The notes: generated by a model from the letters alone, not told the origin. A stretch of DNA of 64,000 nt from Gracilinanus agilis (GCF_016433145.1 NC_058133.1:307123572-307187571), one strand, 5' to 3'. Positions 5,206-63,881 are shown, counted from the stretch's first letter. Program-made: numbers and translations.

Positions 5206-7759
5206 CCAAGAACTATAATAATGTCTAGAGTAATATAATAAGTCTAAGCTAGACTGAATAGTTTGAATCCACATATTTTTCTAAAAGTTAAATATAGCTT
5301 TACCTTCCTGACATAAGAATATCCAGAATGCTACTCTATACTGAGCCATACAGAGTGAGAATGTAACTCATGAGAAATAGCTCATGACTTCTCCCCAAAG
5401 CTTTTCTTTTACCCCTACACCAAGAGGGCACATAGTTCCAAGCAAACTTCATTTAACTATAAGGTATCCTTTGCACACTCAGAAGGATATTTGGTCTACA
5501 TCAGACTTAAAGGTAGAACACCTCAGTCCCATGCTGTATATTAGCCACCAGGCGACACTTTCATTCTGCATAGTTTGGCATATGTAAATTGTTCCTGGCA
5601 TTCTCAACCCTAAGCCTCCTTTTCTCTAACTCAGTGCACTTGCAAGCAGGGCCGCTATTTCTGAATCTCCCACTTGCTGTCTCCATCCCAGTGCTTTCCT
5701 AGATTCCTATGAAATCTAGGGGTGTGAATATTGTCAAAAATAACTTTAAATTTATCAAATGATAAAGTTCTCATCCCAAAGAATCTTAATCTCTTTTTCA
5801 ATTTGATATGACTCCTAAAAGATTCCTCCATGCCAATAACTTAAAGCCATGGGAAACCTGGCAGTTATGGGTCACTTGTCTATCTGTAGGGAGACACGAA
5901 GACTGCATAATATCCACTCTAGAAGAGAGATGGTCTGTGCATAGTAAGAACATTATTCTCTCCATAGTCAAAAAAATTCACTCGCCTTGAAAAAACTCAA
6001 TGAAGGTTTGCTTAATAATTGCAACCAGACATCACAAGAATAAAAAATGATTATGAACTTTAAAAAAATCGTTATCTAAACAAGTAAACATGCCATGATT
6101 CCGTTTATATTAAATCCACAGTGACCATTGCATGCAGTAGAGACCACAGTGTCAAGCATCTTTTGACCAACAATTTCAATGATTAAATGGCTAAATATAT
6201 TGAAATAGAAATTTCTTGAAACCTGAAATTTGTGAAAATTCTTAGATATACTGATTGCTTGACTGAGGGTAGAGTTTTCAGTCTTACCCTCCTTTGTCTA
6301 TCTGCCAGGTCACCCAACCTTCTCCTGTGAAGTCCCTTTCATCTCAAAAGATATGGGACTATAAGCATCTCTGGGTAACAATACCTGCTGCCTTGCAGGT
6401 AGACACCAAGTCTCCATGATAACTACTTTAGGATTGGGTTGATCTGTGCAGAGAAGACTATATAGTAATTCCTGTGGTCATCAACTTTGTACTCTCTTGA
6501 AAAATAAACTGAAGGTGTCATAAGTGTGAAAAAGAGATTAAATTATATAATTCCTAAATCACAATGAATCGCCTCATGGTATAATTTACCTCAATTTCAC
6601 ATTGGTTGTACATATCTTCAAAAGGACAATACAAAGTATTTTTGGCATATTATTTCATAAAATCTAAATCATATGGGAAATATGCTACTTCAAACTTAGA
6701 ATTTTGAGCATTCTGATTCATTCCTGAATGGTTATCTCTGTCTTATGTCTACTTAGTCATGTAGCCTTTCCCAGAAAATCCCACGAAGGAAAGAAAAACA
6801 AAACAAAACAGAGGAAGTCAGATATACATCCCTGAGTAATGGGACCCTGCCAGCATGTAAACAACAAATCTATAGTAACCACTCTAGGGCTAGGTTGATT
6901 ACAAGTAAGGACTGTTTTTCCTTAGAGTCGATTGTTATTCATTCCCTTGCATATATAGCAAAGTTATTTGTAATATCTGTGAAAGAGATGTCACACAAAG
7001 TAAAAAACAAAAACAGAAAAGGTAAAATAAGCAAGATAATATGCAGTTATTTATCCCATGGTACCACTTATTTTAAATATGTATTAACATTAAATTCACT
7101 AGACAACCCAATACAAAACATCACTTCATGGACTGTTTGGTGAAGATATGCAGATTAATTGAATTACTTGAACTTCATCACTTGAACTTCAGTAATGCTT
7201 GTCTGCCTATAGATAGATGTTTCCACGTCTCCCATTTTGCTGGTTGGCCTGGTCCACAGAGTTTCTCTTTGGAAGTAGATTTGAATTCAAAAGCCACAGG
7301 AGCTCTGGTGACAATAAGTAATACCTACATGTTTATATGGAGACAACAGATCACTATGGTAACTTTTATAGGAGTTATCAGATCGATCTGTATACAGGCA
7401 AGAAATTTATTTCTCCCCATGGCTAACAATTTTGTTCTCCTTTAAAAGATAAGTTAAGGAATATGAGAAATGCTCAAATAAGAGTCACACACACATATAT
7501 TTTAAATTGGCATTTAAAATAACAAGGATGATTGTACACACATCACAAATAAAATTAAAAAAAAAACAAAATTCAAAAAATTCAGATTCAGTGGTTCAGT
7601 ATCAGAATGAGAAGGAAAGGACAAAAGGACAGGCTGATTAAGTGCCTACTTTGTGCCAAGTGAACTCCCTCTTCTCAGTTCTTCCTAGTCTCTTATCACA
7701 GAATTGTGTTGTTACTTTCTCCTCTTTGATCGTTGTTCTACATGATGAGGTAGCCTTAT

Positions 7760-9130
7760 TTTTTATTAGGCTAACCCTTCTACTGGATCAAGAGATCCTA
7801 TTCCATCCCATCTCCTTCAATATATTGTCCCTCTGTCATCCCCATATACTAATTTACAATCTTTCTTTCTCGGCCAGTTCATTTCCGACTTTCTATAAAT
7901 ATGTACAACTTCCTCCTGAAAACAGAAAAACAACAAAACTCCTTACTTCATCCTTCCATCTCTGTTAACCATCACTCTGTATCTCCGCTGCCCTATGCAG
8001 TTAAACGTCTCAAAAAGTCTATATGTCTCTGTTTTTTTCTCTGCTCACCCTCAACATCTCTTCTTACAATCTGAGACCCAGCTGTTTTTAAGGACACTAA
8101 TACAATGCTAGTGAAACTGTCAATGGACCTAACCATTTTGGAGAGCAATTTGGAATTATACTCAAAGAGTTAAACAACTACTTACATTTTGACCCCGTAA
8201 TAATACTATTAGATTTATTTCCTAAGGTGATGCAAAAGGAAAATAAACTATATGTCCTAAAATATTTACAGAAATTCTTTTCATAATAGCAAATAACTAG
8301 AAACTAAAAAAATGTTCATCAATTGGGGAATGGCTAACCAAGTTATATGTAGTATATGGTTGTAATGGAATATTATTGTGCCATTATAAATGACAAACAA
8401 GATGACCACAAACTGTATGATGATCAACATTGTTAGTGATATATAGAATTATTGATAAATTGTGTGTGCTTATTTTATATGCAGTTACTTTTATACAGTT
8501 ATTGATAGTTTCAATAAATTTTAGTTGAATCTCTAGGATTTTCTGTGTATATCATTATATCATCTGAGAAAAGAGAATTTCTTGAATACACTTCCTTTGC
8601 TCTTCTGACACTGACTGTGCAGTTCTTAATCATCTTATCCTCTGATTAGTTCAATAGTCTACTTGTGGGCATGCCTGATTCATGTTTTTTTCCCTATTCC
8701 AAACCATTCTCCACTCAGCCATGAAACAGATTATACTAAATGCAGGTCCAGTCATGTCACCCCTCTACTCAAAAACCCCAGTGTCTTCCTTTTACCTCCA
8801 AGAACAAATATAAAATGATATCTTTGGTATTCAAATTTATTTAAATTCAGTAAACATTTATTAAGGCACCTACTATGATCCAGGTACTGTGCTAAGCCCT
8901 AATGATACAGAGACAAAATGAAATTCTTACCCCTCCTGGCCCCCTTTTTTCTTTCTAGTCTTTTTATATCTAGCTTATCAACATGTACTCTTTCATCCAG
9001 GGACACTGATCTCTTGGCTCTTTCACAATTGCAGTACTGCATCTCTTAACTCCTGCATTTTCTCTCTCTCTCACTGAACTCATGTCTTTCTGTCTCCATA
9101 TCCAGAGTCCTATCCATTCTGCTTAAGCTG
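7760..9130 (+). mobile_element. L2 LINE remnants (split by an L1 piece), inside the array gap
   Basis: Pyrimidine-rich L2 ORF2-like text at 7760-8100. L2 3'-region text CCAAACCATTCTCCACTCAGCC...CATGTCACCCCTCTACTCAAAAACC at ~8700-8780. An oppositely oriented L2 tail, AAACATTTATTAAGGCACCTACTATGATCCAGGTACTGTGCTAAG, at ~8852-8896. Confidence 0.65.
8100..8405 (+). mobile_element. L1 ORF2 C-terminal remnant
   Basis: AACCATTTTGGAGAGCAATTTGGAATTAT...CATCAATTGGGGAATGGCTAACCAAGTT...AATGGAATATTATTGTGCC is the L1 3' ORF2 region. Confidence 0.8.
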
Positions 9131-10857
9131 CCTCTTGCAGGATTTATTACTTGAAACTTGGAACTTGAGGAAATCTATATAGGCAACCTGCTTGCCTGTA
9201 AATAGGAATTTCTATTTTTTTCTACTTTTTCTATCTGCCTGGTCATGCAACATTTTTCAGATCAGTCTCTTTAAAGTTCAAAATCAACAACTTAGAAATC
9301 TCTAGGTAATACCTGCCTGTCTGAAGGTAGACACCAAATCTCCATGTTATCCGTCTCAGGACTAGGTTGATTTGTGCACAAATAAAAATCATTTCTCCAT
9401 GACAATTCAATAAAATACAGAATTTCTAAACTCAAAGAAGAGCAGTGACAAACCATTGAAATGTCTTCTGGCTTAAAGTTCTGCTTAAATGCTAAAATCA
9501 CTTCTTGCTATACTTGGGGAATACAATTGTACATTTAAATATGCAGTTGTCTTCCTTAGTACTTATGAAATACAAATTTCATGACCTAAATATTGTTATT
9601 AGTCTTAAACTCAGCTGGATGGCAACTATTGGACTTGAAGTCTGTCTTTATTTTACATTAACTCTTTTAGGTGAACTGTCATATTTCAAAATTCTAATAA
9701 ACAGAGAGTCTCTTACAAATAGTTGAAAAAGAAAGGGGGAAATTAATGTTTTTCAAGAATTTTCTAAATATGGAAATGAGTTCTAAAATAAGTATTGCTT
9801 TCAACTGTCTGTTATAGAGTAAATATACTGAATTGTATATTCCCTTTCAAAATAAACTGAAGTATAAACATTTGGTTTTAGGTGCCCAAAGAGTTAGAAA
9901 AAGAAGTTAATACTTACAAGTATGATTATTACATTACTACAGGTAGCATTTGATGCTGTTATTTAAAAATAATGTTTATACAAGCATCAGAAGTAATCAT
10001 TTTGAGATAAATTTTACCTTAAATTTATATTAATATTATATGTAAGAAAAAAACCAGTGCAAAACATTTCTTAACATACTGCTTCAATGGTTCAATACCA
10101 ATATCATATGCAGGGTATGTTACGTGATTAGGGAATTCTAACTAAATGCCTCTCTGTCCATGAGTACATGTTTTCAGGTCTCCCTTTTTTGTATGTCTAG
10201 CCATCCAGAATTTTTCTAGAATTGGTATTTCTAAGCTCAAAATTCACTAGATCTTAGGAATTTCTTGGTATTACTTACCTGTCTGCAGGTAAACATCAAG
10301 TCTCCATGGTAACTACTCTTGGGAAAGGTTGATCCATTCAGAAGCATGAATCTGTCCTCCTCCTAGACAAAAAAATGTTTCAATCTTTCCAAAAGCATGA
10401 AGATACAAAATAGGTATCACAAAAATATCAAAATGTAAATTCCAACAGTCAAAAAAAGGAATAATTATGCCAACATTAAAAGCAATCATCCCATGATATT
10501 CTTAATATCTAATTAACATTAATCACTGCTTGTGGCAGAGCAAAAAAGAAAACATTATTTGGCACGTTTTAAATGCTCATTGTCCATAACAATGCATAGC
10601 AAGCAGGATATATTGCTTGAAACATAATATTTGGGAAATTTTTATTAATGTCATCCTGCTGTAGGAATATCTCTTCGATACCGTTCTCAGTTTTTCTTCT
10701 CCTTGTCACCCTGACAATATAAACCTTTACTTGAAAGATGGCTTCAGTGTTTCAATACTGACATATGTTGTATCTGAGTTGAAATTTGGAAAATTCTACT
10801 TAAATGCCTTTGTGCCTGTGTGTATATGCATTTCCAAGTCTACTCTTTTGTCTACAT

Positions 10858-11049
10858 CAGTGGTTCCCAAACTTTTTTGGACTATCGCCCCCTTTCCAGA
10901 AAAAATATTACTTAGCCCCCTGGAAATTAATTTTTTTCAATTTTAATAGCAATAAATAGGAAAAATAAATGCACCTGTAGCAATCACCACCTCCCTGGAT
11001 CGCTGCAGCACCCACCAGGGGGTGGTAGCATCCACTTTGGAAATCACTG
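10858..11049 (+). mobile_element. hAT/Charlie-type MITE (family A), 192 bp
   Basis: TIRs CAGTGGTTCCCAAA / TTTGGAAATCACTG; 8-bp TSD GTCTACAT / GTCTATAT (one mismatch), resembling the NTCTAGAN target typical of Charlie elements. Confidence 0.92.
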
Positions 11050-11538
11050 GTCTATATGGACATTCAATCTTCTCTTTGAAAGATCTTTCAATGACCAAAA
11101 TCCAGAAGATTTTAGGAATGTTTAGTTATTACTTGCCTATCTGCAGGTAGATAGGAAGTTTCCATACTAACTAATCTTGGGGGAAATTTATTTATCTAGA
11201 AACATGGAATATCTTTCTTATGCGGAACAAACTATTATTGCTTCTTCCAAATGTATCTGAGATATGCTTGACTTTTGCAAGTTGATATCACACAACCAAA
11301 ATTCAAAATAATTATCAGCAGACAAAGTAATAGAAACAAATAGCTCAAAATCACAAATCATAATTCCAAGGAACTATTTTTACTAAATCCACATTAAGCA
11401 TTCCATGCCATGGACAACATGTTGCAAACTAGTCCTTGAAAGATTCTTTTAGTTGCCTAATGTATGTAACCTATGAAAGCTATATTACTTGAAACTTTGG
11501 CCCATTGGATCTGTAGGTAATGTACTCATGCTCTAGAG

Positions 11539-11709
11539 CAGTGATTCCAAAAGTGGGCACCACCGCCCCCTGGTGGGTGCTGCAGCAATCCAGGGGCACA
11601 GTGATGGCCACAAGTGCATTTGAGGGTGGTGATAGTATGTGACAGGGGGCGCTAAGTAATATTTTTTCTGGAAAGAAGGAGGCAGGCCAAAACAGTTTGG
11701 GAACCACTG
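11539..11709 (-). mobile_element. hAT/Charlie-type MITE (family A), 171 bp
   Basis: TIRs CAGTGATTCCAAAA / TTTGGGAACCACTG; perfect TSD CTCTAGAG; reverse-complement homologue of 10858-11049 with a different central segment. Confidence 0.94.
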
Positions 11710-14700
11710 CTCTAGAGGTATACTCATTTATACACCTTTGATTTTCCTTTCTCTGTGCTCATTTAGTTCTCTCCTTAGATATTTCCTCAGAGGTCAAAAG
11801 CTGCTCAATATCAGGAATCCTTGAGTGATTAATTTTTCCCCTTGCCTATAAGTTGACACTAGGTCTCCATGGAAACTAATCCAGGGCTGATTTGATCAGT
11901 AGACATGCAAAAACTATCATCCTCCTCATAACCAACAAATTTTTATTTCCTTGCAAAATATCTTGAGGTTTATGTGATATTTTTCAATAGGTGATACGAA
12001 CATTTTAAAGAAATAAACATTTAAAACAAGATTTGATGTACCAACACTGCAATTTTGAATTACTGGCTAATTTCTGCTTGCCTCTGGGTAGACTTTTCCA
12101 TGTCTCCCTTCTTTTTCTGTATGACTGGCCACCCTTCCTTCTTCTTGGAAGTCTCTTCAAAGGAAAAAAAGCTACTCTGCCTCTCTGAGTAAACCTTGCC
12201 TGCTTGCAGGTAGACACCAAGTCTCCATGATAACTACAATAGAGCTTTGATCTGTACAGAATCAAGGATCATATTTCTCCCTCAGGTCAATATTTTTTCA
12301 TTTCCTTGCCAAGTCAACTGAATTAAATTTGACATCTGCAAAAACATATCACAGACATTTAAAATTAAGCATCCACTTTTAACATAGCATAGATGATTAT
12401 CTCAACATCATAGGTAGTCATGACAGGGTACTGTATATATCAATTCTACATCAGCCATTGATTGAATTCACTAAACAACACAATGTAGAACATTTTTTGA
12501 CAAATTCTTTAAGTAAATAAATCAACATCACATGCAAAATGTACTGCTTCAAGAAGGGTGAATACTTCTGGATAATGCCTCCTTGCATCTGTATATATTT
12601 CCATTTCTCTTTGTCTTTCTCCTTAGCCAGTCTCCCATCACTGAAGAAATTTTCAAAGTTCTGCTTGCCCTCAGGTAGACACCAAGTCTTCTATGATAAC
12701 TACCATTTGACTGGGTTGATTCATGTAGACTATAGCCCTCTCTATGGCCAATAATTTTATAGTCCTGTGAAAAATGTGCTGAGCCTTATGTGACATTTTC
12801 AAATACGTGTCAACAGCATTAAAAGTGGGAAATAATATAATAAAGTTTATGATATGTAACTCTTTCCTTTTCCTTTTTGGCTCAAATTTGCATTAATATT
12901 GTATGCAGTAAAACAACAACTAAAAACTGTTCTTTGAAAGATTGTTTCTGTAGATGAATATAGCAATCATGTGGTTTTTACAGTTTGAAATAGGAACTAC
13001 ATGAACTCTGATTAATATTTGAGTGCTTGTGGGTAGGCCAGTAATTTTTCACTCCCTTACAAAACAAGTTGAGTAATGCATATTTTGAAGTCTCCTTAGC
13101 ATTTAAAAAAGAAAAAATCAATATTTAAAATAAAGATGCTTATGCTAACATTAGAAATAATCACTCCATACTACCTTTTACCTAAAATTTACATTAATAG
13201 CTCATGCAATAGAAAGCACAACTAAAATATTCTATTAAATTTGGTTTTAATGGCATAATATCTAAATCACATGCAAGCTATATTATTTGAAACTTGGAAT
13301 TTTGGAGCCTCAGTAACTTCAAGCCAATTCTGGGCAGACATTTTCATTTCTACCCCTTTTGTCTGGCTCCTTGGTCACTTCCTTGGAAATAAATTCAAGA
13401 TCAAAGGCAACTTAAATAATTCTAGTTAATTCTTACTTGCCTAATGGTAGAAATCAGGTCTCCATAGTTGCCACTAAAGGAGGGTTGATTTGTTCTAATG
13501 AAGAATTACTTTCCTCTACAGTTCTAATAACCTTGCAAAATCAGCTGAGGCATACTTGATGTGTGTAAAAGAGCAGTGTTGATATCAAAATAAATATCAA
13601 CATTTCAAATAAAGATTATCTTAGCTTCACAGGAGATTATGCTACAGTACCAGTTCTATGAAATCCACATGAACTGTGCCATGCAGTAGACAACACCACT
13701 GAAATTTCACTTGACTAAGTTTTCCAGTATTTAAATATATTTGGCCAAGGCAGGATGTGTTTCTTGGGTAATTTGGGAAACTCTGGGTAATGAATTCCTG
13801 CTCTGAAAAATGTTTGACATTTCTGTTTTTTCTGTCTCCTTGGCTACCCAACCTTCTTTTTTGGCAATCCTTTCAAAGGTAAAATATCATAAGACTTTAT
13901 AAAACTCTGGACAATACCCACCTGCCTTTGTATTGGTAAATACTCTCCATGGTATCTACTCCAAGTCTATATTGATCTGTACAGAATAGAGGACTACATT
14001 CTTCTCCCAAGCCAATGATTTTGCTCTACTATGGAAAATAGGCTTAGGCATATATCATATCTTCAGATTGGCTTCACAAGTATAAAAAAGTACAACATTT
14101 AATGAGTATGATTATGCCAAAATCAAAAGTAGTCATTTCATACTGCTGCTGTTTACCACAAATTAATGACATTGTAGCATATAGTAGATAACATAATAGA
14201 AAACACCAATTAAATTTTTTTCAGTGGCTAAATGCAGAAGTCATATGAGGGATTATTACTTGATATATCGAAATTGAGGGGCTTGAGAGAATACATTTCT
14301 GTTCTTTGGGAAGATTTCCATCCCACTCTTCTTTTTCTATCTTCCAGGTAACATTCTTTTATCTTTGGAAATCCCTTGAAACATTCCAATCTCCCAGAAG
14401 TTATGAATCTGGTTAATTCTTACCTGCCTTCATGTAGACATTAAACCTCCATGATAACTACTCTAGGTCTGAATTAATCTATTCAAAGTAAAGGACCAAA
14501 TTTTCCCCCCATATCCAACAATTTCACACTCTTTTGCTAAAAAAAAACTTGAGGCAAAATTATTGGATAGGTATCATACATATAGAAAAAAATGTTTACA
14601 TGATAAATGTTGAGGATGATTGTAGCAACTTCATAAGTAATAACCCCATCTTTCTCTTTGCCTCAGATTCATATTCTAATATGTTGTAGTAAACATATGT

Positions 14701-16419
14701 AGTGGAAGGCATAATGCAGAACCTTTCACAACAGCCTGCTTTACTTGGTCAGTATCTTTACCAAGTTCAAGATATATTACTAGAAACTTGAAACTTAGGT
14801 AGCTATGGGCATTCCCTGTCGGCTGTTGGATGGATACGTCCTTGTCTCCTTCCTTTATCTGTCTGTTGGGTCACCCAGTCTTCTTCATTTATGTACCCTC
14901 AAGATAAAAATCCCATTCTAAATTAGACATTTCTGTTAATGGGTAGAAAACAAATGTTCCTAATAACTACTTTTTGTCTGGGTTGATCTGGGCAGAGGTA
15001 AGGACTGCATCATTTTTCACTTCCTTGCAAAATCAGCTATCAATATCTGTTACTAGAGTAGCAAATATTCATATTTAAGATAACAAGGAAGAGTATTTCA
15101 ATATCACAAGTAATCATCCCATGGAAACATTTATATCTGCAGATATATAATTTGAAATGTGGGATTTAAGGAACTTTGGTTAGTTTCCATTTGACCTCAT
15201 ATAAACTCTTCTATGACTCTTATCTTTGTATATCTTGTGCATCACCCAGCTTTCTCCTTGGAAGGCCTTTCCTGTTTAAAGCCAAGGGAACTTAAGTGGT
15301 TCTGTGTAATCCTGGCTTGTTTAAAGGTAAACACCAAGGTTCCATGAAAACTACACAAGACTAGGTTTATCTACATAAAAGCAAAGACTCCATTTTTCCT
15401 CAGTAGCCAGTAAATTTTTACTCTTTTGTAAAATCTTTGGAGGCATACATGAATCTCCAAGTTTATGTCAAACATCACTAAAATAATTAACATGGAAAAT
15501 TAGTTGGATAATAATCCCAACTTCACAGATGACAATCCATGATACTACACATCTTAAATATATTAGTAATGAATGCAGTAGCCATCACACAATGGAAAAG
15601 AAAAAAATTACTTGATAGACTGACATACTGTTTTAATGTCTAAATATATGTTATATACATATAAACAATATACATTCATGTATACATACATAGCATATAC
15701 AAAAATGTATATGCAATTTTCATATTTGGTATATATATATGTACATATATATGCACACACATACTTTTCTGTGTGTATTTATTACTTTAAAATTGAATCA
15801 TGATGAACTTTGGGAAATATGTGCCAATTTATTTGCTTGTGGGTATACACTTCTGTGGCTCCATTCCCTTTCCTAGTCACTCAGGATTATCCATGGGCAT
15901 CTCTTTAAGATGAAAAGCCATAGGAATTTAGGAAGTTCTGTAATTTCTAGCTGCCTGTGGAATGTCATGAAATGTCAGTGTTAATTATCCAAAGTAAGGA
16001 GTGATCACTGATGAGATAAGGACTACATTTTTGCCCTTGGCTAACAATTTTGTTCTCTCTAGGAAATAAGATAAGTCTATCTTCAAATAGACTTCACATG
16101 TATTAGCAAAACTTAAAGTTAATACAAAAAAATTAATATAATCCACAGGATGATTATCTTAATATCAAATAATCACTATTCCTGGTTACTCTTTACCTCA
16201 ATTTCCATAAACATTTTTTAAAGTAAACATCCTAATACAAACCATTGCTTAATAGTCTATTTCAGTGGCCAAATGTCCGAGTTATTTGGTAAATATGCTT
16301 TAAGCACATATCATAATAAATACATGTATGCCCATTGTACTCAAATAAGTATAAACATAAAAATGAATTCAAAACTAATATAGGTAAAATATAACAAATA
16401 TACATAAGTATTGCTGTCA

Positions 16420-16610
16420 TTGTTGTTGAATTGTGTCCAGCTTTTTGTGATCCTGATTAAGATTTTCTTGACAAAGATATTATAGTGGTTTGCCATTTTC
16501 TTCTCCAGTGGATTGAAGTAAATAGAGGTTAAGTGAGTTGCCCAAGGTCTGAGACCGTATTTGAACCTGTCTTTCTGACTCCAGACCCAGCCCTCTAGCC
16601 ACTGATCTAC
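16420..16610 (-). mobile_element. MAR1-type SINE remnant
   Basis: TTCTTGACAAAGATATTATAGTGGTTTGCCATTTTCTTCTCCAG (RTE tail, reversed), then GGTTAAGTGAGTTGCCCAAGGTC and TTTGAACC...CTGACTCCAG (core and head, reversed). Confidence 0.75.
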
Positions 16611-17249
16611 CTGTGTATGTGTGTGTGTGTGTAAAATTTAAATAGCAAAATAATACATATGTAGCTAGAAGAAAATTGTGCATATATGGCTTGAACACAT
16701 AAGTAGGCATGAATATGTAGAGAGAGGTACTAAGACAAGGACACAACTCAGAAACAACAATATAAACCGTATATTTAGTTTTTTTTATTAAAAATATATA
16801 TATATATATATTATTTATCAGTATTGTCATCTGGATATATGTGCAACCAATTTCCACTTTTTTCTATAACACTGAAAGCTAGTTTGGTCATAGGTTGCAT
16901 TGATCCAGCTCTCTTATAAATTGTAGTGTTCCATCCCTATGCCCCTGTTGTTTTGTTTTATGGTCTGATCCTGATAATCTCCTTACCTATAGCTCTTCAG
17001 TATGAAATCTTACTGAGAGGACCCAAGCTATCATCATTTCTCTATGTATTATTGCTGATGTTTTTCTATAGTTGAATTTCTAGATGAAATATTTATTGCC
17101 TCTGAATTCATTCCATTTCCCTTTAGGATCTTTCTCCATTCAAGCAATGTCACAATAAACAGTCTTTGTCATTTGAAACCTAACTTTCTGAATCACTATC
17201 TACTTCAGATGGTCTTTTTATCACTGGTATTGGGTGTGCCACTCTCATC

Positions 17250-18600
17250 CTTCAGGTGGCTTATTCATTTTACTCAGAGAATGCCAAGTTAATTGTCCAT
17301 CATTTCTTACCAACTCATTAGTGTCTACCTAACTCTCCTATGAGTAATTGCAACAAATTCTGCTTACTGTACCTCCACTTTTTTCTGGGACTATTTTCTA
17401 AAAAAGGAAAGATGCATGGTCTCTAAGTAACTTGGAACACAGTAGCTTGCTATAGGTCTACTAACTTGTGTATCCTTTGCTCTTGAACACCAAGGTTTCT
17501 CTACAAAACTTTCTCCTTGCTGAAAGTTGACAGTGAGCATAGATATCGTAATGTTTCCATCTGAGTTCTTCTGAAGTGAGGGCATTGTTAACTTGCAGGC
17601 TTCTTTCTGATTCTAAATCATGAGATCAATGGGTTATGGGTATTTGCATCTTCTAAGTTGGCAGTCCAAAAATCAATGAATTTGTGTGGCTCTCATTCAA
17701 ATATAGCAAATATGATATAAAATCTATTACAACACTCCTGATAGTTATGAATGTGAACTAAAAATTCCAGATATTGAATCCATGGTTATTTTTATTCAAG
17801 GTCACAGTGTTCCTAATGTGTACATTAATGGACATTTGAAATGCTTGGTCCAAATCTCCCTCAGGATGTTAAAATTTAGCTCTAACCTTTTTGACACTTG
17901 CGAATACTACTATTTCTTTGAGGAGCTTGCTCTCAAAATCTGCCTTGATCAGAATAGATTCTTATAGGGAAACCAAACACTGAGAATTATTTTTCATACC
18001 ACATCTTACTAGTAATGGAAACTTTTTAGTTCTTTGTTGGGTATGGTTGGGCATACATGGCGAAGTAAAAACTCATCATTAAGATATAGATTATGGTCTT
18101 ACTTTCTTCTTCTAGGGACATTCAATCAATGTAGAACAGTTTCAAAAGTTTGCTCATGTATGCTTACATTTTGCACATAAGCAGTATGAGTTGGCAGTTT
18201 TTCTTTGAACACATCAAATATGTCACACACTTCTTGATGATATATGCTACAATACTGGACCAGTAAAATCTGTTTCTTACTACTTCTAGGTTTCTTTTAC
18301 CTAAAATTCTATAGTCACCATGTAGTGTATTCATGGTGCTGTTATAATATTCTGGAGTGAACCAGCTGCTTCTTAGTGCCCTATATAAGTAATAGTCTGA
18401 TGTTGCATTATGTTTCACAACTCTAATTTCTGTCTTTCTTAATAAACGACTGAATCCTAATACAAAATAAAGCAAAAGAGACAAAAATTGTAGATCTTGA
18501 AATTTCTTTGTAGATGGTCTATTCAGGACCATAGCAATCTTTCTTGAGTACTGGTTATCCCTTTGACATGACTTGAGAGAGTCTCTAAAACAAAAATTCA
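17250..18600 (-). mobile_element. Decayed Ty3/Gypsy LTR-retrotransposon pol fragment (integrase Zn finger, core and C-terminal domain)
   Basis: Minus-strand translation across stops and frameshifts gives LYR..QLV.PEYYNSTMNTLHGD..LGKRNLEVVRNRFYW; LKLFYID*MSLE..ILMM..FAMYAQPYPTKN*K..KMWYEK*FSVFGFPIRIYSDQGR/DFESKLLKEI; HPEGD; LVHIHN; and KVL*RNLGV..HKLVD. The motif order is that of a Gypsy integrase. Confidence 0.88.
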
Positions 18601-19179
18601 TCAGTTGATAGCTTCAGAACATCTGCCTTTAACCAGGCCTATTCTCCTGTTCTTCCTGTGTCCTTCCAAATGCAAAATCTAGAAATATAAATAATTTCAG
18701 GTAATTCATGTCTATGATCATTTTCTCTCTGTTCTGTAGATTGATGTTTAAGCTATATATTTTTTAGTTTTATTGACATTTTTACGTTACAAAAATTTGT
18801 AGATTACTCCTACTATCTGAGAGGTGTCTCAAAACAAAGTTCAGCAGTAAAGAAAATTAGTATTCAAGTGAACTTACCTAAAGTACAAGATTGCATCTGT
18901 ATCACCCACCTGACACCTATTTTTAAAATTTTTATTATTTTAAAAAAAGGACAGAAATCTATTTTCTCTCCCTACAATCCCAATAAAGAAAAGGAAAAAA
19001 ATAATTTCTAGTAAAAAATGAGCATATCTAAAATTTGTTTTCTAGTAACAAACATGCATATCTATCAGTACTAGGCTTCAAACTGCATTATAAATCAGTA
19101 ATTATTAAACCAGTTTGTACTGCTTCTAAATGTGTCCATCAGTGACATAGATTAGGGTACAACATACAGAAAAAAAGAA

Positions 19180-19810
19180 ATATAATAGCTTGGTATTTGG
19201 AAGACCTAGAGACCCCAGTTATTGGGTAGACTCCTTATATGACAAAAACTACTAGAAAAACTTGAAATCAGTTCAGTAGAAATTGGATGTAAATCAACAC
19301 TGTATACCAAGATAAGCTTCAAATAGATATATGACTTATACATAAAAGGTGATGTTATAAGCAAATTAGAGGAGCAAGGAAGAAATTACCTTTCATGTCT
19401 TTGGATAGGGAAGAATTTATGGCTAAAGTTCTACAGAGGATTTTTAAAATGAAGGATTTTGATTATAAAAATAGAAACATTTTAGCACAAATCAAATCTA
19501 ATCAAATTAAAATGAGAAGAGAAATACACAACTGGGGGGTAAATCTTTTATAGCAAAATATCATACCAAAGATATATAAAAATCATTCAAATTTATAAGA
19601 CTAAGATAGATTTCTCAATAGTAAATCAAAGAGTATGAATTGGTGGCCTTCAAAGGAAGAAATTTAAGCTATCAATAAACATGAAAAATGCTTCAAATAA
19701 CTAATAATTAGAGAAATATAAATTAAAACAACTATGAGATTCCTTCTCAAACTATCACATTGGTAGAATTATGAATTAGTCTAGCCATACTGGAAGCAAT
19801 TTAAAATGGT
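19180..19810 (+). mobile_element. L1 ORF2 3' remnant
   Basis: GACTCCTTATATGACAAAAACTACTAGAAAAACTTG..., AATTAGAGAAATATAAATTAAAACAACTATGAGATT. Confidence 0.8.
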
Positions 19811-22293
19811 GTGGGGAAAATATGCGTACCAAGCAAAACAAATCACCACAATGCCTGTATAGGGGTATGTATATGTGTGTAACATATATACATATATGGA
19901 ATCATGGGTGGGATCATGAGTATTTATTGTATTTATCATAGTCTTTATTTCCAAAGTGGTTTCTTCATACAGTGTTGTTGTCAGTATATAAGTAACTCAT
20001 TCTATTCCTCATTTTATAAAGGCAAAACTAAAACAATTTATATGACATCAATATTATAAAAATGAGAGGTTTCATAATCTTGAGTTTAGATTCTTTAATG
20101 CCTTTCTTTTAGCTCTTTGCCTGATTGACTAGCCTTCTTCTTGATAACTCCAAATTGTTTGAAGTAAATGGTCAAACTAGTAAAACCCAGTTTCACAGAT
20201 CTTTCTTCAACTATGTCAAAAGAATCCGGGAGCATATACAGTGTAATTCTTAAGATTGTAAGCAAATGACTGCCAGCCAGATATTCCAGCATATGTGAAA
20301 CTTTTGTGTTGATAAACTGATTGTCTTAGTTCTTTTATTCTAGATCTAGTGGACATATATTCCTAATATTCTATATTATTATTTTAGGTGATAAAAATGG
20401 TCTTCTATGCTCAATAATGTTGTTTTTGATGAGTAACTCTCACAAATGACTTCAAAGTTTTTTTTTCATAGATAAAGAAATATTCCAGAATATTCTTGTA
20501 ATGGTCAGGACTCTGTGAGGGGCTTTCTGTTGGTACCACCTTGAGAACACATCTACCCTACTACTAAGTATATCCTTCAACCAATCCTTCCATTCTTCAG
20601 GTGTTAGGGTATTCCTACTTGTTAATAGTAACTTTCTGGTACTTTAACTAGGCTAGAATTGGTAAGAGATAACATCTAGAGGGAAATCTTGAGACTATTT
20701 CCTGTGCACATATATAAAAGATAAAAAGGGATTACTTTGAAAAAAAATTAGATGCTTTATTGAGCACAGAAGGCTTGCTACGAGGAGAAAATAAAAACAA
20801 AAACTAATCCATATTTGAGTCAGAAAAAAAAAGCATCTGTTATCAGAAGGATATTAGAGGTCCAGAAATGGTTTTCTTAGAAATGGAACCATGCTCTCCC
20901 CAGGAAATAAATATGGAAAATTTGGGTCTTTGAAAAGAGATGTTATCTCTTACCAAAAATATATCAAGAATAATTGAGTTATCAAAAATGTCAACTAATT
21001 TATAAAACCCTATTTGAATAACATCATTGGATCTGATGTTGCTATGAATTATTTAAAAACATTTAAGTTATTTTACAACCCTTTTCAATGATTTTTAGGT
21101 TCCTTATTTTTTATAGTTGTGGCTACTAATATCAAGAGATCTCTGTTAACTCCTACATTCAAAACATCACCACTTATGCATTAAAGTCTATGTCCTTAAA
21201 ATAAACTGAACCATGCTTATAATTTTCTTCAAGGAAATGCTAAATTGTGGTACAGAGATGCAATGTTATACAGTAATCACACAATGAAGCAATAACTCCA
21301 TATAAGAAATGCATAGCAAGTAAAATAGTAAAGTATGTATGCAAATTAGTGGCAATGGAATGCATAAGATAATGGGAAAGCAATTACAGCAACTGCAGCC
21401 ATGTACCAACAATTAGCATATAAGTAAACAAATAGTACCCATTGTCAATACCACCTACTCATGCATGTAATCTCATCAAAACATATATTTAACACATTAA
21501 CCAGCAGCACCAACAGACACTTAAATTTAAAATCATTCTATTAATCAAATCATTCTATCATGGAACAGAGCTTTACCCATTGAAGACTTTAAAATTATTA
21601 GGATGCAACCATGTAACATCACACATTACCATTGCTTGCTATTGTTTACCTAAAATTCACATTACCTATTTTATATCATAGACAGTAAAAATAAAATATA
21701 ATTTGAAAGACTGTTTTGTTGTCACACTAAGGAGGTATAATTTGAAACTTGGTACATGGGAAACTCTGTAATGTCTGCCTGCTGTGTGAATATTCACTTC
21801 AGTGTCTCAATCCTTTGCCTTACAACCCAGGAAGTCTCTTCAAAGTAAAAATCCAACTGAATTCAAGAAAACTGTTTAAGTCACAAAGTCTCAATGGGAG
21901 ACTACCACACTGTGGGAGTACATTCAAGAACAAAGTTGCTCTCTATGGAGAATAACAGGAACAATAAGCGTAAAAGACCAATAGAGATCCCCCAAAATAT
22001 TAAATACTTAAAATAAACAGAATAACTGTGACAGCATTACAGATGCCTATCCTTTATCCTAAATCCAAATTAGTATTGAATTTATTACACAACATAATAT
22101 GAAACATTGCTCAATAATCTTGCAAGTAGATATTATTTAAATAACATGGTATATTCTTCTTGAAACTTGGAGAACTCTAGGTAATGCCTACCTCTTCTGT
22201 GGGTAGAAATTCTACTTAACACTTCTCTGGTTCTCTTTCTGGCCATTCTAACTTCTTAGTGGAAGTCCCTTGAAAGTCAAAACTTTTTAGAGA

Positions 22294-22475
22294 GGGGCAG
22301 CTGGGTAGCTCAGTGGAGTGAGAGTCAGGCCTAGAGACAGGAGGTCCTAGGTTCAAACCCGGCCTCAGCCACTTCCCAGCTGTGTGACCCTGGGCAAGTC
22401 ACTTGACCCCCATTGCCCACCCTTACCAACCTTCCACCTATGAGACAATACACCGAAGTACAAGGGTTTAAAAAA
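22294..22475 (+). mobile_element. Young full-length SINE1_Mdo-type tRNA-derived SINE
   Basis: GGGGCAGCTGGGTAGCTCAGTGG A box, GGTTCAAACCC B box, MIR core, AAGGGTTTAAAAAA tail; perfect 14-bp TSD AAAACTTTTTAGAG (22279-22292 and 22476-22489); inserted inside an array unit. Confidence 0.95.
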
Positions 22476-23778
22476 AAAACTTTTTAGAGGTAGAGAGCTC
22501 TGGATAATACTTTGTTAGCAAGTAGACACAAAGTCTCCATGGTAACCACCCTTTGGTCAGAAGTAAAGACTACACTATTCCTCATCACCAACAATTTGGT
22601 TCTCCCTTGAAAAATAAGGAGCAGTATACTACAAACAGTCCCCAAACAGATTCACACATAATCAATGCTATACAAAAAGATAGTTACACCAATACCAGAA
22701 GTAATAATCAGATGACATTTTCCCCTTAAATATTCATTTGCATTGCATGTAATTGGTGGTGCATGCTTGCAAACTCTAAGGCTGAAATTGGCATATATTT
22801 GGAGTTCTAGATAGTTCAGAAATTTGGCATTAGCCCAAGTTAGATGATAAATACTTTGAGTCTGCTAGTATTTACCACAGCCACCAAAATAATGATGGAA
22901 AATTAAAACAATAAGGCTAATTATTCTACCATCACTAAAAGTCACTGGATGATACTAATTACATCAAATCCATATTCACATGGAATCCTGGAGATAGCCC
23001 AATATAAAGCATGACTGGACAGACTGCTTCATTGAACAAATAAATGAAGGATATCACGAACTTGGAATCTGAGAAATCCTGATGCCTCTCTATCCTTGGC
23101 AGATACTTCCTTCTGCCTTTCTGTGGGATCAGATTTGTCAATGAAGGTCTCTTCAAGACAAAAATTTTGGTGAACTTATGCAACTCCATGTAATGCATGC
23201 TAATGTGAGAAGTTACTAAGTTCCCACCTTTACTACACAATGGAAAATATGATTTCTGGAAAGGCAAAGTCTACATTCCTCCTCACACTTAACAATTTTG
23301 ACTTTCTCCATAAACTCAACTGAGGTCTGTTAGATATCTGTAAATAGACCTCACAACTAATAGGAAAAACTACAGTTAAAGTAAAAAGGGTAATAAGCTA
23401 AAAATGACAGGTTATTATCCTTTGGTGTTGTTATCTTCAAATCCATTAACTTTTCGTGTAGGAGAAAACATATTACAAAACATCATTTAATAGACTGTTT
23501 CAGTGGCAAAATGTCTAAATAACATACAAAATGTATAACTTAAAAAGTTGGAACCTGGGAGACTTGGAGTAATGCTTACCTGCTCAGAAAAGAGATATTG
23601 TTTCCATGTTAACTAATGTAGAGTAGATAGGTGCCAAGACAAGAACTACATTCTTCCCTGTCACAATTTTCCACTCAGCAGAGAAGTCATGAGATTCTTG
23701 AAATCTACAAATAGACACCACATGAATCAGGATAAAAATCAAAATTTAAAACAAACAAGACAATTAATTATTCTACTG

Positions 23779-24131
23779 TATTAGTGTTTGATTCAGAACC
23801 ACATTAAAGTGGCATGTGATAGGAAAATAGAAATGGCAATACTTGACAAAATCAATGAATAAGTTAAATTAAATATATATTACTTAAACCTCAAATTAAG
23901 GAACTTTGGGCATTGTTTGGATTCCTGTCTTTAGAAAATTCATGTGCCTGTTCCTGATTATCTGGTCACTAAGCCTACTCACTAGAAATCCCTTTAAAAG
24001 AACAGTCTCAAGAATTTAGGCAATTCTTGATACCTGTGTGCTTTCAGGTAGACACCAAGTCTCCATGGTAACTACTTCAATGGGAGGCTGATCTATGAAG
24101 AATTAAAAAAAATACATTTGTCCATTTGGTA

Positions 24132-24194
<63 letters not shown>

Positions 24195-24548
24195 NTATTA
24201 GTGTTTGATTCAGAACCACATTAAAGTGGCATGTGATAGGAAAATAGAAATGGCAATACTTGACAAAATCAATGAATAAGTTAAATTAAATATATATTAC
24301 TTAAACCTCAAATTAAGGAACTTTGGGCATTGTTTGGATTCCTGTCTTTAGAAAATTCATGTGCCTGTTCCTGATTATCTGGTCACTAAGCCTACTCACT
24401 AGAAATCCCTTTAAAAGAACAGTCTCAAGAATTTAGGCAATTCTTGATACCTGTGTGCTTTCAGGTAGACACCAAGTCTCCATGGTAACTACTTCAATGG
24501 GAGGCTGATCTATGAAGAATTAAAAAAAATACATTTGTCCATTTGGTA

Positions 24549-24602
<54 letters not shown>
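23779..24602. repeat. Perfect 417-bp direct duplication flanking a single N (probable assembly artefact), each copy ending in (TG)n(TA)n
   Basis: 23779-24194 and 24196-~24602 read identically by eye; N at 24195; both copies terminate in a TA microsatellite. Confidence 0.9.
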
Positions 24603-24605
<3 letters not shown>

Positions 24606-25834
24606 GTATACATATACACACATATTGTGAATGTCTATGTTTGTATGTGTTTACTTCTATCTTCCTGGTTATATAAATTTCTCCACGGATGTTACATCAA
24701 GGTCTAAAGCCAAAATGGCTCAATTATGCCTGTTTTCTTGTAGCTTAACACTTGGTCTCTATGAAAACATGATAACTTTCTTCCCATACTTTACCAAAAA
24801 TTTTACCAAAATTTTGTACCCCTTTACCAAATCATCTAAGACATTTTCATCATCTGCAAATAGACACTAAATGCATCTCAACATTAATATATTTATTATC
24901 CCACTATAAAAAGTTCATTATCCTATATTTTTATTTCAAGTGCACATTAATTTTGCATTCAGTAAGCAACATTATGAAAAACAACTTTCTCAAAAGCTAT
25001 TTAGACAAGGAATTTCAGGGGCTAAATGTCTAAGTCACATGCAAGACTAGTTACCTGAATCTTTGAATTTCTGGAATTTTAGATAATTCATAAGAGCTCT
25101 GGGAGTAGACTTTTCTATAGCTAACTTTTTTGTCTTTCTTACTGGCCACTCAGGATTCTTCATGGAAATTATCTCAAGGTCAAAATCCACAGGGGTTCAG
25201 GTAACTCTGGGTAATGTCTTTTCAAATAAGGTAAACCCCCAAACTTCACAATAACTACTGTAGGAAGGAATTGACTTGTTTAAAGGAAAGGATTGCATTC
25301 TTCCCCACTGTCCAAAAAATGTGTTCTTCCTTGCTTGACAGCTTTGATATATTTGATATTTACAGAAATGCCATGTATGAGAATAAAGGACACCATTTAA
25401 AATTTAAACATGATTTTCCGGATATTAGAGGAAATCATTCAATTAGACTATTTTTATCAAATTCAAATTAACTTCCAAAGGAGCTGGCAGTTTCAGTCAT
25501 CTTTTCCCAGTCATTTCCTTCAGCAAATCTGAAACAGGTCTGATATTCATCTTCCCTCTCAAATTTGCAAGCCAGAAGTGCCAGCAGTAGCTTGAAGTTT
25601 GAAGAGTTCCAAAGAAAAGTTGAAATTGAAGTCTTCAGCTTCCTGCCTTTCACTATCTTTGTCCAACCCCTCCCTCAGGGCAGGTCATTCATTAATATCA
25701 ATAGAAAGAATTCCATAACAATGGGCTTTGGGACAGAGGTTATATATATTCAGACATATTACTTAAAACTTGGAATTTACAAAACTTTTAGATATGTATT
25801 TTTCCTTATGTTCTGTAGATTTCCATTTAACCTC

Positions 25835-31281: not shown

Positions 31282-32550
31282 CAGATCAACTTAAGAAGGA
31301 AGCAAAGAATGAAAGAGCCATGATTTCAAAAACAGGGAAGGAACTGAAGGACTATGTGGAAGTTCATGCTGGATATGACTCCCTTCTTAAAGGCATCAAT
31401 GAAGACAAAAATCCCTTTAAGGAGAAGGGTGGTTGTATGATAAGCTGACCACCTTTTTCCACAAACTTGATCCTCATCTCAAGGGTCAGCTTTTCTAGTC
31501 TCCTAGCTGATTATCTGTAGACCCTAATTCCAGGTAACCAAATACCATTCTACACTACCCTGAAATTTTTGTCCACTCTCTTCCAGGGTTATAGCCATTC
31601 TTTCCTAGGTAACTAATTGGGTGTTAAAGCCTAGTTGCACTGGGGCAGTGTAAACTTAGCCAGGAAAAATGCTGCCAGCTCAATCCAAATGGAAACAAAT
31701 TTATTGGTTTAGTCATATTATTTCCAGACCAGCTCCTCTTTAAATAATGGCAAAGGACACATTATAGTCCAGCCACATGGGTTTCCTTTCTCATTTCCTT
31801 CTTTATAAGATACTTACTTTACAAATACCAAATTATGTAAAATACAGAGAGAGCAAGAGTCATTGATGGCAGCCTCAGGTACATAGAAGAAAATTCTAGA
31901 TGAGGAGTAAAAAAAAGAAATAAAAGAAAGAACTGTCTTATCTCCCAAGGAAAGTTTTCAAAAGGACCATCATCATTTAATATTACTAAAATCTTCTCCT
32001 TCCTTATCTTAATGAATATCATTATGTGATGGTTAACTTTCACCATGATTTTTTTTAAAAATCATCTAAAAATTGAATGGCATTACTCATTTAAGATGCA
32101 CACTTTACATAAAATTTCTTTTAAGAAATTATTAATTTTGCTGTCCCATTACTTATTTTTGTTAATCCTAATAGTGATGATGATGACAATGATGATGATA
32201 ATACTAATGATGACACTGAACTTTAGTCATGCCATCAGTCTTGTCTGAAGCAGCACAATGATTTGTTGGAGATAGTACATATGAAGAACAGTTTGTAAAG
32301 AGGCACACAAAAAAAAATCTTCCATAATAACCATTGTTTAAATTTAGAAAGAAGAATTCCTTATATGCTACATTTATTCAACCAGATAATAACTGGTGTT
32401 TGCCTATTAGCAACAGTAAACTTTTTTTTTTATGTGTTACAACTGCCTAGATACTTAGTTTGCATACCTAAGGGTGACTTGAGTAAAAAACAAAACAAAA
32501 ACAAAACAAAAACAAAAAAAACAAAAAACTGTCCTACTAGGCTTGTAGAA

Positions 32551-32812
32551 GCCTCTAGTCCAGTGTTGGTGAACATTTTCAAATTCAAGTGCCCAGAGGG
32601 CAAATTCAAGCTGTCTGTAAGCCACCACCCCTCCACCACCCTGCCCCCAAGATTACAGATTACCCAAAAGAATGGAGGAAGTGCTTGCTTTGGATGGCTA
32701 GACCAAGGGGTGGAGCATGCAAGATATGCCCTTGGGCACTGGGAAGAGGGGGAATGGAGCAGCTCCCTGAGTGCCAGCTGGGCATGTGTGCCAATACTTT
32801 GCCAATGCTGCC
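32551..32812 (+). mobile_element. hAT-type MITE (family B)
   Basis: Left end CAGTGTTGGTGAAC, right end TTTGCCAATGCTG; internal TTGGGCACTGGGAAGAGGGGGAA..GCAGCTCCC shared with 63380-63610 and, reversed, 36570-36769. The TSD is not clean. Confidence 0.7.
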
Positions 32813-63379: not shown

Positions 63380-63610
63380 TAGCCTTGTTGTGGAATCTTT
63401 TCTGAATTTGAATGCCAAGATGGAAAATCCATCCAGTCTCTGAGCCCTCTGATTACTGGAGAGAGTTGAGGGAGAAAGTATTTGCTTTAGACAGCTGGAT
63501 AGAGGGGTGGAACATGCAAAAAAATGTCTTTGGGCACTGGGAAGAGGGGGAACTGAGCAGCTCCCCAAGTGCTGGCTCTGCACATGTGCCTTGTCTTCAC
63601 CAACTCTGCT
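63380..63610 (+). mobile_element. hAT-type MITE (family B), diverged
   Basis: Shares GGGGTGGAACATGCAA..TTTGGGCACTGGGAAGAGGGGGAACTGAGCAGCTCCCC..CATGTGCC with 32551-32812. Confidence 0.7.
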
Positions 63611-63679
63611 ATAGGGCTTTGGATAAGTTGGCTGTTGAGACCAGTGCAAATTTCTGCAGCCTGGAATCAGGGTCTATAT

Positions 63680-63881
63680 CAGTGATTCCCAAAGGGGGCA
63701 CTACCACCCCCTGGTGGGTGCTGCAGCGATCCGGAGAGGTGGTGATGGCCATGTTTTTTTTTTTTTTTTTGCATTACATTCTATTCTGAGTTCAATAAAT
63801 AGTTTCATAATTTCCAGGGGGCCCTAAGTAATATTTTTTCTGGAAAGGAGGCGGTAGGCCAAAAAAGTTTGGGAACCACTG
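63680..63881 (-). mobile_element. hAT/Charlie-type MITE (family A), 202 bp
   Basis: TIRs CAGTGATTCCCAAA / TTTGGGAACCACTG; perfect TSD GTCTATAT. Confidence 0.94.

Follow-up and report, generated by a model that had tools for sequence, protein, structure and literature searches.

The window, that is, the whole stretch of 64,000 nucleotides analysed here from the opossum Gracilinanus agilis, harbours a tandem array of approximately 20 kb, in which an iterated nhmmer profile search identified about 39 full or partial units of approximately 488 bp each, every one of them in the same (+) orientation.

5788 to 26237, plus strand: ancient tandem array, delimited by the nhmmer profile, with direct-repeat families at a spacing of approximately 470–510 bp

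Unrelated sequence breaks the array at 7552–9131 and 16300–21587. In an independent DNA run, the segment 9101–15100 was covered at a depth of approximately 30, and it behaves as single-copy. GC content is 33%. Global alignment of units against each other gave an identity of 0.65, barely higher than the 0.62 obtained with shuffled controls, and the unit flanks are diverged to near saturation. As for genes in the vicinity, neither lists of ORFs nor a Pfam search with four of them provided anything informative, and no tRNA was found with ARAGORN.

Within these units, a short core stands out. The 23-mer CAGGTAGACACCAAGTCTCCATG, which lacks CpG like the rest of the core, is present in exact form at 6396, 12207, 24045 and 24462, with a chance expectation of zero, and all copies of the core occupy the same position within the approximately 488-bp unit. 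The first three of these identities had been reported in an earlier note on this DNA and were confirmed, while the exact copy at 24462 is an addition to that list. The 34-nt identity reported there between the units at 6.4 and 12.2 kb also exists, although the real run is 35 nt long (6392–6426 equals 12203–12237). The exact and near-perfect copies, to which no strand is assigned, are the following.

6392 to 6426: perfect core, copy 1; 35-nt block equal to 12203–12237, with the 23-mer at 6396–6418
12203 to 12237: perfect core, copy 2; flanks just 62–63% identical to those of copy 1
24045 to 24075: perfect core, copy 3, carrying the G variant CCATGGTAAC; 30 of 31 positions equal to copies 1 and 2
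24462 to 24492: fourth exact core copy, within a 417-bp near-100% duplicate of 23779–24195
9324 to 9346: near-perfect core with 2 mismatches; left half kept, X-box-like right half lost
10286 to 10316: near-perfect core; left half with 2 mismatches, X-box-like right half intact
12672 to 12702: near-perfect core with a 1-nt insertion and one change in the right half; left half perfect
22519 to 22549: near-perfect core; left half with 2 mismatches, X-box-like right half intact

The copy at 24462 probably reflects a duplication in the assembly instead of an independent copy, because it lies in a segment approximately 99–100% identical to its neighbour (23779–24610, TRF) which begins directly after a single N at 24195. 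The copies at 9324, 10286 and 22519 differ from the core by two mismatches each, exactly as claimed previously, and the one at 12672 represents an eighth near-copy. Among the near-perfect copies, the two halves of the core decay independently of each other, which is expected of a composite site.

The earlier note had also described poor alignment of the flanks, and this proved to be correct, as the seven units with a good core share only 51–65% pairwise identity outside the core, compared to 83–100% inside it. When 466 sliding windows of 23 columns were inspected along the unit of 488 columns, five to seven units with no more than two mismatches from the consensus were seen solely in the windows at columns 430–441. 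Likewise, the longest identical runs between pairs of units (35, 23, 23, 21, 20, 19 and 19 nt) are all located within columns 429–464. Under a neutral model, the identity of individual flanks to the consensus (0.59–0.74 per unit) leads to an expectation of 0.006 perfect 23-mers per window, and in 2,000,000 simulated neutral windows three perfect copies never occurred, nor did seven copies within 2 mismatches. Simulation, sliding windows and pairwise flanks thus all place the core identity far above the unit background, the comparison that the earlier note had proposed. Heterogeneity in the age of the units is excluded as a cause, since flank identity and core identity are uncorrelated (Spearman 0.12, p = 0.6) and the flanks of the good-core units have diverged to the pairwise level given above, so that these units are not younger than the others. 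The consensus of the family is itself the perfect core, and the perfect copies therefore retain the ancestral state. It is probably selection that holds the core.

One rival explanation does without any function, in that the core could be shared through short-tract gene conversion, or could have survived by chance in a neutrally evolving array. Tandem arrays do exchange sequence, the copies at 6.4 and 12.2 kb have an uninterrupted 35-nt run in common, and the number of core mismatches over the units forms a continuum from 0 to 12. Nevertheless, chance is excluded by the neutral simulation, and according to our calculation a 35-nt run in the 6.4/12.2 kb pair has a probability of roughly 1e-5 at their background identity of 63%. 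Conversion requires homology, which flanks as diverged as these scarcely offer, and it would leave tracts at varied positions, whereas every long identical run is found in the same stretch of approximately 35 columns. Moreover, what is shared is the ancestral consensus and not a derived variant. Confinement of the runs to columns 429–464, together with the identity of core and consensus, indicates ancestral retention at a fixed site and not scattered conversion tracts. Selection is accordingly a more likely cause than gene conversion, and we consider an origin without function improbable.

In regard to what may be selected, the right (3′) half of the core, GTCTCCATGRTAAC, agrees in full with the restricted X-box consensus, a match that was recognised post hoc by comparison with known motifs. 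That consensus, defined in Drosophila, reads GYTRYY-N1-3-RRHRAC (PMC2375033).

6410 to 6423, minus strand: X-box-like palindrome GTTATCATGGAGAC, the 3′ half of the core, found by a pattern scan with GYTRYYNNRRHRAC
10300 to 10313, 12221 to 12234, 22533 to 22546, 24059 to 24072 and 24476 to 24489: homologous X-box-like matches

The pattern GYTRYYNNRRHRAC has 8 matches in the window, compared to 2.0 expected, and six of the eight are core copies; being homologous, these six do not represent independent events. The sole difference among the three perfect copies, G or A at CCATGRTAAC, corresponds to the degenerate Y position of the restricted consensus. By our reading of the sequence, the insertion at 12672 falls within the variable spacer, where the pattern still fits as N3. 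Agreement with the mammalian consensus GTNRCC(N0-3)RGYAAC (PMC5752003) is less complete. The G variant agrees with it at 10 of its 12 specified positions, compared to 9 for the A variant, which two of the three perfect copies carry. In GTTACC-AT-GGAGAC, the first half-site is exact, the spacing is correct and the second half matches at four of six positions, while GTTATC of the A variant matches at one position fewer.

These features lead us to favour, tentatively and at somewhat less than an even chance, the view that the core serves as a DNA element bound by protein in a sequence-specific manner, kept by purifying selection in a subset of about seven array units. It would be a composite element, with the right half GTCTCCATGRTAAC as an X-box-type palindrome and RFX winged-helix factors as its putative binders, while the left half CAGGTAGACACCAA would bind an unnamed partner. 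Taken together, the good-core units would form a homotypic cluster of candidate binding sites over about 18 kb. Under this explanation, the very old array would be decaying neutrally outside the core. From sequence, we infer that the constraint may act on the DNA and not on a transcript, that RFX may be the factor concerned, and that the role might be regulatory, in the form of clustered enhancer or tethering sites. Further observations count against a binding site: 31–35 invariant bases are long for a single factor, and the single orientation, together with exon-like signals on either strand in the ancestral unit, makes a function at the RNA level possible.

Among known systems, RFX X-box sites are close in that the 14-bp palindromic half GTTAYC-AT-GGAGAC fits the restricted Drosophila consensus completely, and the G variant contains one exact mammalian half-site (GTTACC / GGTAAC). 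On the other hand, the second half-site of the core departs from the mammalian consensus, the block conserved here has twice the length of an X-box, and X-boxes of RFX are mostly known as single, promoter-proximal sites, while the putative sites here would lie in a 20-kb tandem array. A short core kept better than the rest of the unit is also a feature of arrays built around a factor site, such as macrosatellite or imprinting-control repeats with CTCF or YY1. Arrays of the latter type are GC- and CpG-rich and usually homogenised, in contrast to the array described above with its 33% GC, its CpG-free core and its nearly saturated units, and no CTCF- or YY1-type motif was seen in them by eye.

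Instead of binding a factor on DNA, the core could act as an RNA-level module within a long transcript, composed of duplicated exon–intron units or transcribed as one unspliced lncRNA, where it would serve as a repeated protein- or RNA-binding motif in the manner of Firre, NORAD or the exons of snoRNA host genes. By our reading, the plus strand of the ancestral unit contains TACTTAC, a pyrimidine tract and CAG/ at the start of the core, followed approximately 55 nt later by AG/GTAAGG, and the minus strand contains YAG/ATCAACC, the core and CAG/GTAAGT. The uniform orientation of the units agrees with transcription, and each of the three perfect copies has kept an AG and a GT or GC donor on the minus strand. 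Yet donor scoring on both strands speaks against an exon model, as the scores are not associated with core conservation (rho −0.32, p = 0.16, and −0.02, p = 0.94). Minus-strand donors of the perfect copies are mediocre (3.7–4.7 bits) and the strongest ones belong to units with decayed cores, while the plus-strand GTAAGG donor is, by our reading, gone in six of the seven good copies, in which the best plus-strand donor scores low. Neither a reading frame nor a structure is preserved. A run search with a 6-kb stretch returned one DNA-like run and no RNA run containing at least 5% of that stretch, which is a weak point against the model, as spliced 55-nt exons would escape. On balance, we hold an RNA-level module in a long transcript to be rather unlikely. 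Coding exons were considered as well: counts of open frames over 21 units were 11, 10 and 3, with no frame preferred. A coding exon with a Kozak ATG (METWCLP...) is rejected on account of these counts and of a conservation pattern that is not codon-like, and alternative or mutually exclusive coding exons because the perfect copies have no synonymous differences and the conservation reaches upstream of the ATG. Immune-receptor J or V segments were discarded as well, since inspection by eye of the sequence at the core revealed no FGXG-type frame and no heptamer or nonamer, and a V gene would not fit into a unit of this length. With the selector and docking sequences of Dscam-type clusters of mutually exclusive exons, the array shares a near-invariant core of approximately 25–30 nt beside each of many diverged, exon-like tandem units. 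Unlike in those clusters, the exon-like pieces here are without a preserved frame, and a complementarity scan detected no separate complementary site, hence no single docking site, in the window, where complementarity is highest in the upstream blocks of the units themselves; the docking model was therefore rejected.

Alternatively, each unit could be processed into a mature small RNA that corresponds to the core, either a microRNA or some other short species. The conserved block has the length of a small RNA, and a block just upstream repeats the core in imperfect inverted form, as recognised by consensus self-comparison, the complementarity scan and the folds.

6365 to 6388, no strand assigned: upstream block, imperfect inverted repeat of the core, at unit columns ~403–424

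The two can pair into an imperfect hairpin of approximately 65–70 nt at 9324, 6396 and 10286 on the minus strand, but this hairpin is weak (−15 to −23 kcal/mol, z-scores −1.4 to −1.9) and missing from two of the three perfect copies (12207 and 24045). Its partner arm is not conserved, both flanks of the core diverge and the core alone is kept; the short hairpin that the upstream block gives with TACCTGC/GCAGGTA is inconsistent. The fold-back of approximately 85 nt that the earlier note proposed on the plus strand did not withstand folding, with MFE z-scores from −1.0 to +0.5 per copy and structures that vary between copies. Per-copy folding of both strands in two window placements produced no stable precursor-like hairpin either: folds of 81–97 nt reach about −12 to −24 kcal/mol, z-scores lie mostly between −2 and +0.7, and the lone value of −3.2 belongs to an unrelated hairpin. 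RNAalifold on 12 full units predicted 0 pairs and no consensus structure. Rfam searches of the array and of one unit alone, with the gathering threshold as well as E <= 10, left the cores without a match; microRNA-family matches were below threshold and restricted to (TG)n(TA)n microsatellites. A canonical microRNA gene or cluster is rejected on these grounds, having neither a stable precursor hairpin nor conserved paired arms, as is an array of C/D or H/ACA snoRNAs, for which the cores again gave no Rfam match and the unit consensus, examined by eye, has no RUGAUGA...CUGA order. The array does resemble SNORD115/116, C19MC, miR-379/410 and repeated host-gene exons in having units of one orientation with a short conserved piece in diverged spacer and exon-like framing around it. 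It differs in the lack of C/D or H/ACA boxes, a stable hairpin, an Rfam match and conserved structure, and in a conserved piece of 31–35 nt that only about a third of the units have kept. A mature small RNA thus appears very improbable, and of the functional element that the earlier note had proposed from the conserved window, the functional part is supported, the small-RNA or microRNA half is not, and the protein-binding site is the alternative that remains and that we favour. A further RNA reading, which takes the units for remnants of a U1-like gene of the snRNA type, came from comparing the unit consensus with features of U1 and of snRNA promoters. By our reading, the plus strand carries ATACTTACCTG on the upstream side of the core and, with CCATGATAAC, a sequence similar to stem-loop I of U1; an octamer-like CATGCAAG lies approximately 175 nt upstream, a TCACC... 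box approximately 65 nt upstream, and AATTTTGT with a 3′-box-like stretch downstream. These resemblances are colinear in the consensus and constitute a lead only. The Rfam U1 covariance model gave no match at E <= 10 over 10.7 kb or on a single 201-nt unit, the alignment to U1 requires two indels of approximately 10 nt with stem-loops III and IV absent, and the core is better conserved than the U1-like 5′ end, which equals the complement of a consensus splice donor. We regard such an origin as highly improbable.

Looking across the RNA readings, it is unlikely, judging from sequence, that this would be a marsupial locus expressing the core as RNA, whether as an orphan short RNA without a canonical hairpin or as an lncRNA with about seven 31-nt modules. 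Under that equally doubtful joint reading, the orphan short RNA might be snRNA-like or cut from a long precursor. A rough estimate from unit divergence suggests that the 31-nt module may have persisted for about 100 million years during the decay of the remaining unit sequence. The core string was found neither in scans of metagenome and viral sequences nor in the literature searched. Expression would make the core an RNA element not described so far; if it is a factor-binding site, the locus would constitute an unusual ancient homotypic cluster in a gene-poor, AT-rich marsupial region. The sequence is short and exactly defined, and it is directly testable in both cases. A block of 31–35 bases that stays letter-perfect amid near-random repeats amounts to a clean natural experiment, in which the decayed sister units serve as internal neutral controls and constraint can be read in one genome.

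Two minor observations concern individual parts of the units. The upstream block is present twice per unit, with its second occurrence at columns 270–302, and in the unit at 22519 the upstream part appears, judged by eye, to be replaced by a SINE-like element.

The window is AT-rich (GC about 33%) and holds an ancient tandem array of a unit of about 488 bp, in which the core, the 23-mer CAGGTAGACACCAAGTCTCCATG, lies within a conserved block of 31-35 nt. The features on which the analysis is based are the following.

5788-26237, plus strand: about 39 full or partial copies of the unit (iterated nhmmer profile search)
7552-9131 and 16300-21587: unrelated sequence breaking the array
6396, 12207, 24045 and 24462, plus strand: exact copies of the core (motif search of the window)
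9324, 10286 and 22519, plus strand: core copies with two mismatches each (same search)
23779-24610: pair of 417-bp repeats, the first at 23779-24195, the second holding the core at 24462

Chance would produce none of these core matches. The three identical 23-mers and the three copies about two substitutions away that the earlier note had described were thus recovered, with 24462 in addition, while the 34-nt identity reported between the 6.4 kb and 12.2 kb copies holds but extends in fact over 35 nt (6392-6426 and 12203-12237). The two 417-bp copies are about 99-100% identical, each has a (TG)n(TA)n microsatellite at its end, and the second begins at the base that follows the window's single N (24195). 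This repeat is a probable assembly or gap-closing duplicate, without which there would be three exact cores instead of four, and 24462 is left out of all counts of perfect cores. The core region is kept in 22 units: three are perfect, the one at 12672 carries a 1-nt insertion and one change, three have two mismatches, and the others have 4-12.

In one independent DNA run, contigs span 9101-15100 and their depth stays even, near 30, except at two high-copy repeat insertions, so that the array is real and single-copy in the genome. Word depths at these insertions (10701-11100 and 11501-11900) reach millions, which marks them as dispersed repeats of very high copy number that have entered units. 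Here the contigs also have joints unlike those of the window, which suggests that individuals differ in structure or in assembly. Within the unit, about 60 nt are directly duplicated (columns 270-328 and 396-452 of the unit alignment), and the block that immediately precedes the core (columns ~403-424) repeats it imperfectly in inverted orientation. Outside the core there is only one long identical run, 20 nt at columns 7-26 (TGGCTAACAATTTTGTTCTC), shared by the unit starts at 7400-7439 and 16018-16057 (83% identity over 40 nt), each directly preceding one of the two large interruptions.

Whole-unit global alignments reach 0.65 against 0.62 for shuffled units, so the duplications must be very old. 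Against this background no other 23-column window of the unit is as well conserved as the core (mean majority fraction 0.81 vs 0.69, z = 3.2). Any two of the units with the seven best-preserved core copies (the three perfect ones, 9324, 10286, 12672 and 22519) are 83-100% identical within the core and 51-65% elsewhere, in agreement with the poorly aligning flanks noted before. Five to seven units lie within two mismatches of the consensus only at columns 430-441 of 466 sliding windows, and columns 429-464 hold all of the longest runs (35, 23, 23, 21, 20, 19 and 19 nt) in which two units are identical. Under a binomial neutral model, set unit by unit to the identity of the flank to the consensus (0.59-0.74), 0.006 perfect 23-mers are expected per window, and neither three perfect cores nor seven within two mismatches occurred in two million trials. 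The comparison with unit background that had been proposed thus places the core above it by a wide margin, and core quality is not tied to unit preservation (Spearman 0.12, p = 0.6). As the family consensus and the perfect core are one and the same, the units bearing that core have retained the ancestral sequence. The core is therefore a real observation, and the constraint on it is very likely selective. That it arose by gene conversion or chance, with no function, is improbable; conversion in particular is a poor alternative to selection, because homology is lacking in the flanks, the shared block begins and ends at the same positions in all pairs, and no derived variant is common to the copies.

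Of the two roles suggested earlier, a small RNA or a protein-binding site, the former is very unlikely. The proposed plus-strand fold-back of about 85 nt gave z-values of -1.0 to +0.5 and differing structures in seven copies, minus-strand folds were no better, and RNAalifold predicted zero pairs over twelve full units. Shifting the window onto the upstream inverted-repeat block does give an imperfect hairpin in 6396, 9324 and 10286 (-15 to -23 kcal/mol, z about -1.4 to -1.9), which is however missing from two of the three perfect copies. Rfam had no matches in the whole window at gathering thresholds and none on the cores at permissive ones, including one unit searched alone. The only microRNA-family matches, below threshold, are to mir-297, mir-466 and similar families on TG/TA microsatellites (24120-24200, 24545-24630 and 15630-15770); these are artefacts of low-complexity sequence rather than microRNA genes. 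Another motif of moderate conservation, GGATGATTA...TAATCATTCC (columns ~105-142, e.g., 12380-12420 and 14110-14150), can pair as a 7-9-bp stem with a loop of about 17 nt; RNAalifold drops it, and it has no Rfam match. On the plus strand the units may also resemble U1 snRNA, in ATACTTACCTG, CCATGATAAC and octamer-like and PSE-like boxes. This is a lead only, and an snRNA-like relic is the least probable origin, the Rfam U1 model finding no match.

The core could also act at the RNA level, as a module within a long transcript, although this is unlikely. Read by eye, both strands of the ancestral unit bear exon-like signals. On the plus strand TACTTAC, which resembles a branch point, is followed by a pyrimidine tract, CAG| where the core begins and AG|GTAAGG about 55 nt downstream; the minus strand has YAG|ATCAACC, the core and CAG|GTAAGT in that order. 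Such signals are not preferentially retained where the core is. On neither strand do splice-donor scores correlate with core mismatches; some of the strongest minus-strand donors lie in units with decayed cores, those of the perfect copies are mediocre, and the plus-strand donor, also by eye, is lost in six of the seven best copies. A minus-strand coding cassette exon (about 55 nt, Kozak ATG) was rejected, its frames being open in 11, 10 and 3 of 21 units with none outstanding; since, moreover, the perfect copies show zero synonymous differences and conservation extends upstream of the ATG, the constraint is on nucleic-acid sequence and not on a peptide. A complementarity scan of the window found no Dscam-like docking site for the core.

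The reading we tentatively favour is that the core may be a composite protein-binding DNA element, retained in a subset of units. Its halves decay independently in the near-perfect copies (left kept in 9324 and 12672, right in 10286 and 22519), which suggests the composite nature. Read on the minus strand as GTTAYC-AT-GGAGAC, the right half (GTCTCCATGRTAAC) fits GYTRYY-N1-3-RRHRAC, the restricted X-box consensus used for RFX targets (PMC2375033), which is a Drosophila and not a mammalian consensus. This pattern has 8 matches in the window against 2.0 expected; six of the matches are cores and are homologous copies. Compared with the mammalian GTNRCC(N0-3)RGYAAC (PMC5752003), the two forms of the right half, differing at one base, agree at 10 (G variant, with one exact half-site) and 9 (A variant) of 12 specified positions. 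The sole difference among the three perfect copies falls on a degenerate position of the X-box consensus, and the insertion in 12672, judged by eye, sits in its variable spacer. As it is post hoc and its six core matches are homologous copies, the X-box assignment is treated as a testable lead, not a result.

Elsewhere, the core was not found in the literature searched, in metagenome scans or in a viral scan. Outside the array, two plus-strand ORFs at 32365-32889 (174 aa) and 63412-63789 (125 aa), with no Pfam match, have a common GHWEEGE(W/L)SSS...SA...VP motif and are probably two copies of one dispersed repeat.
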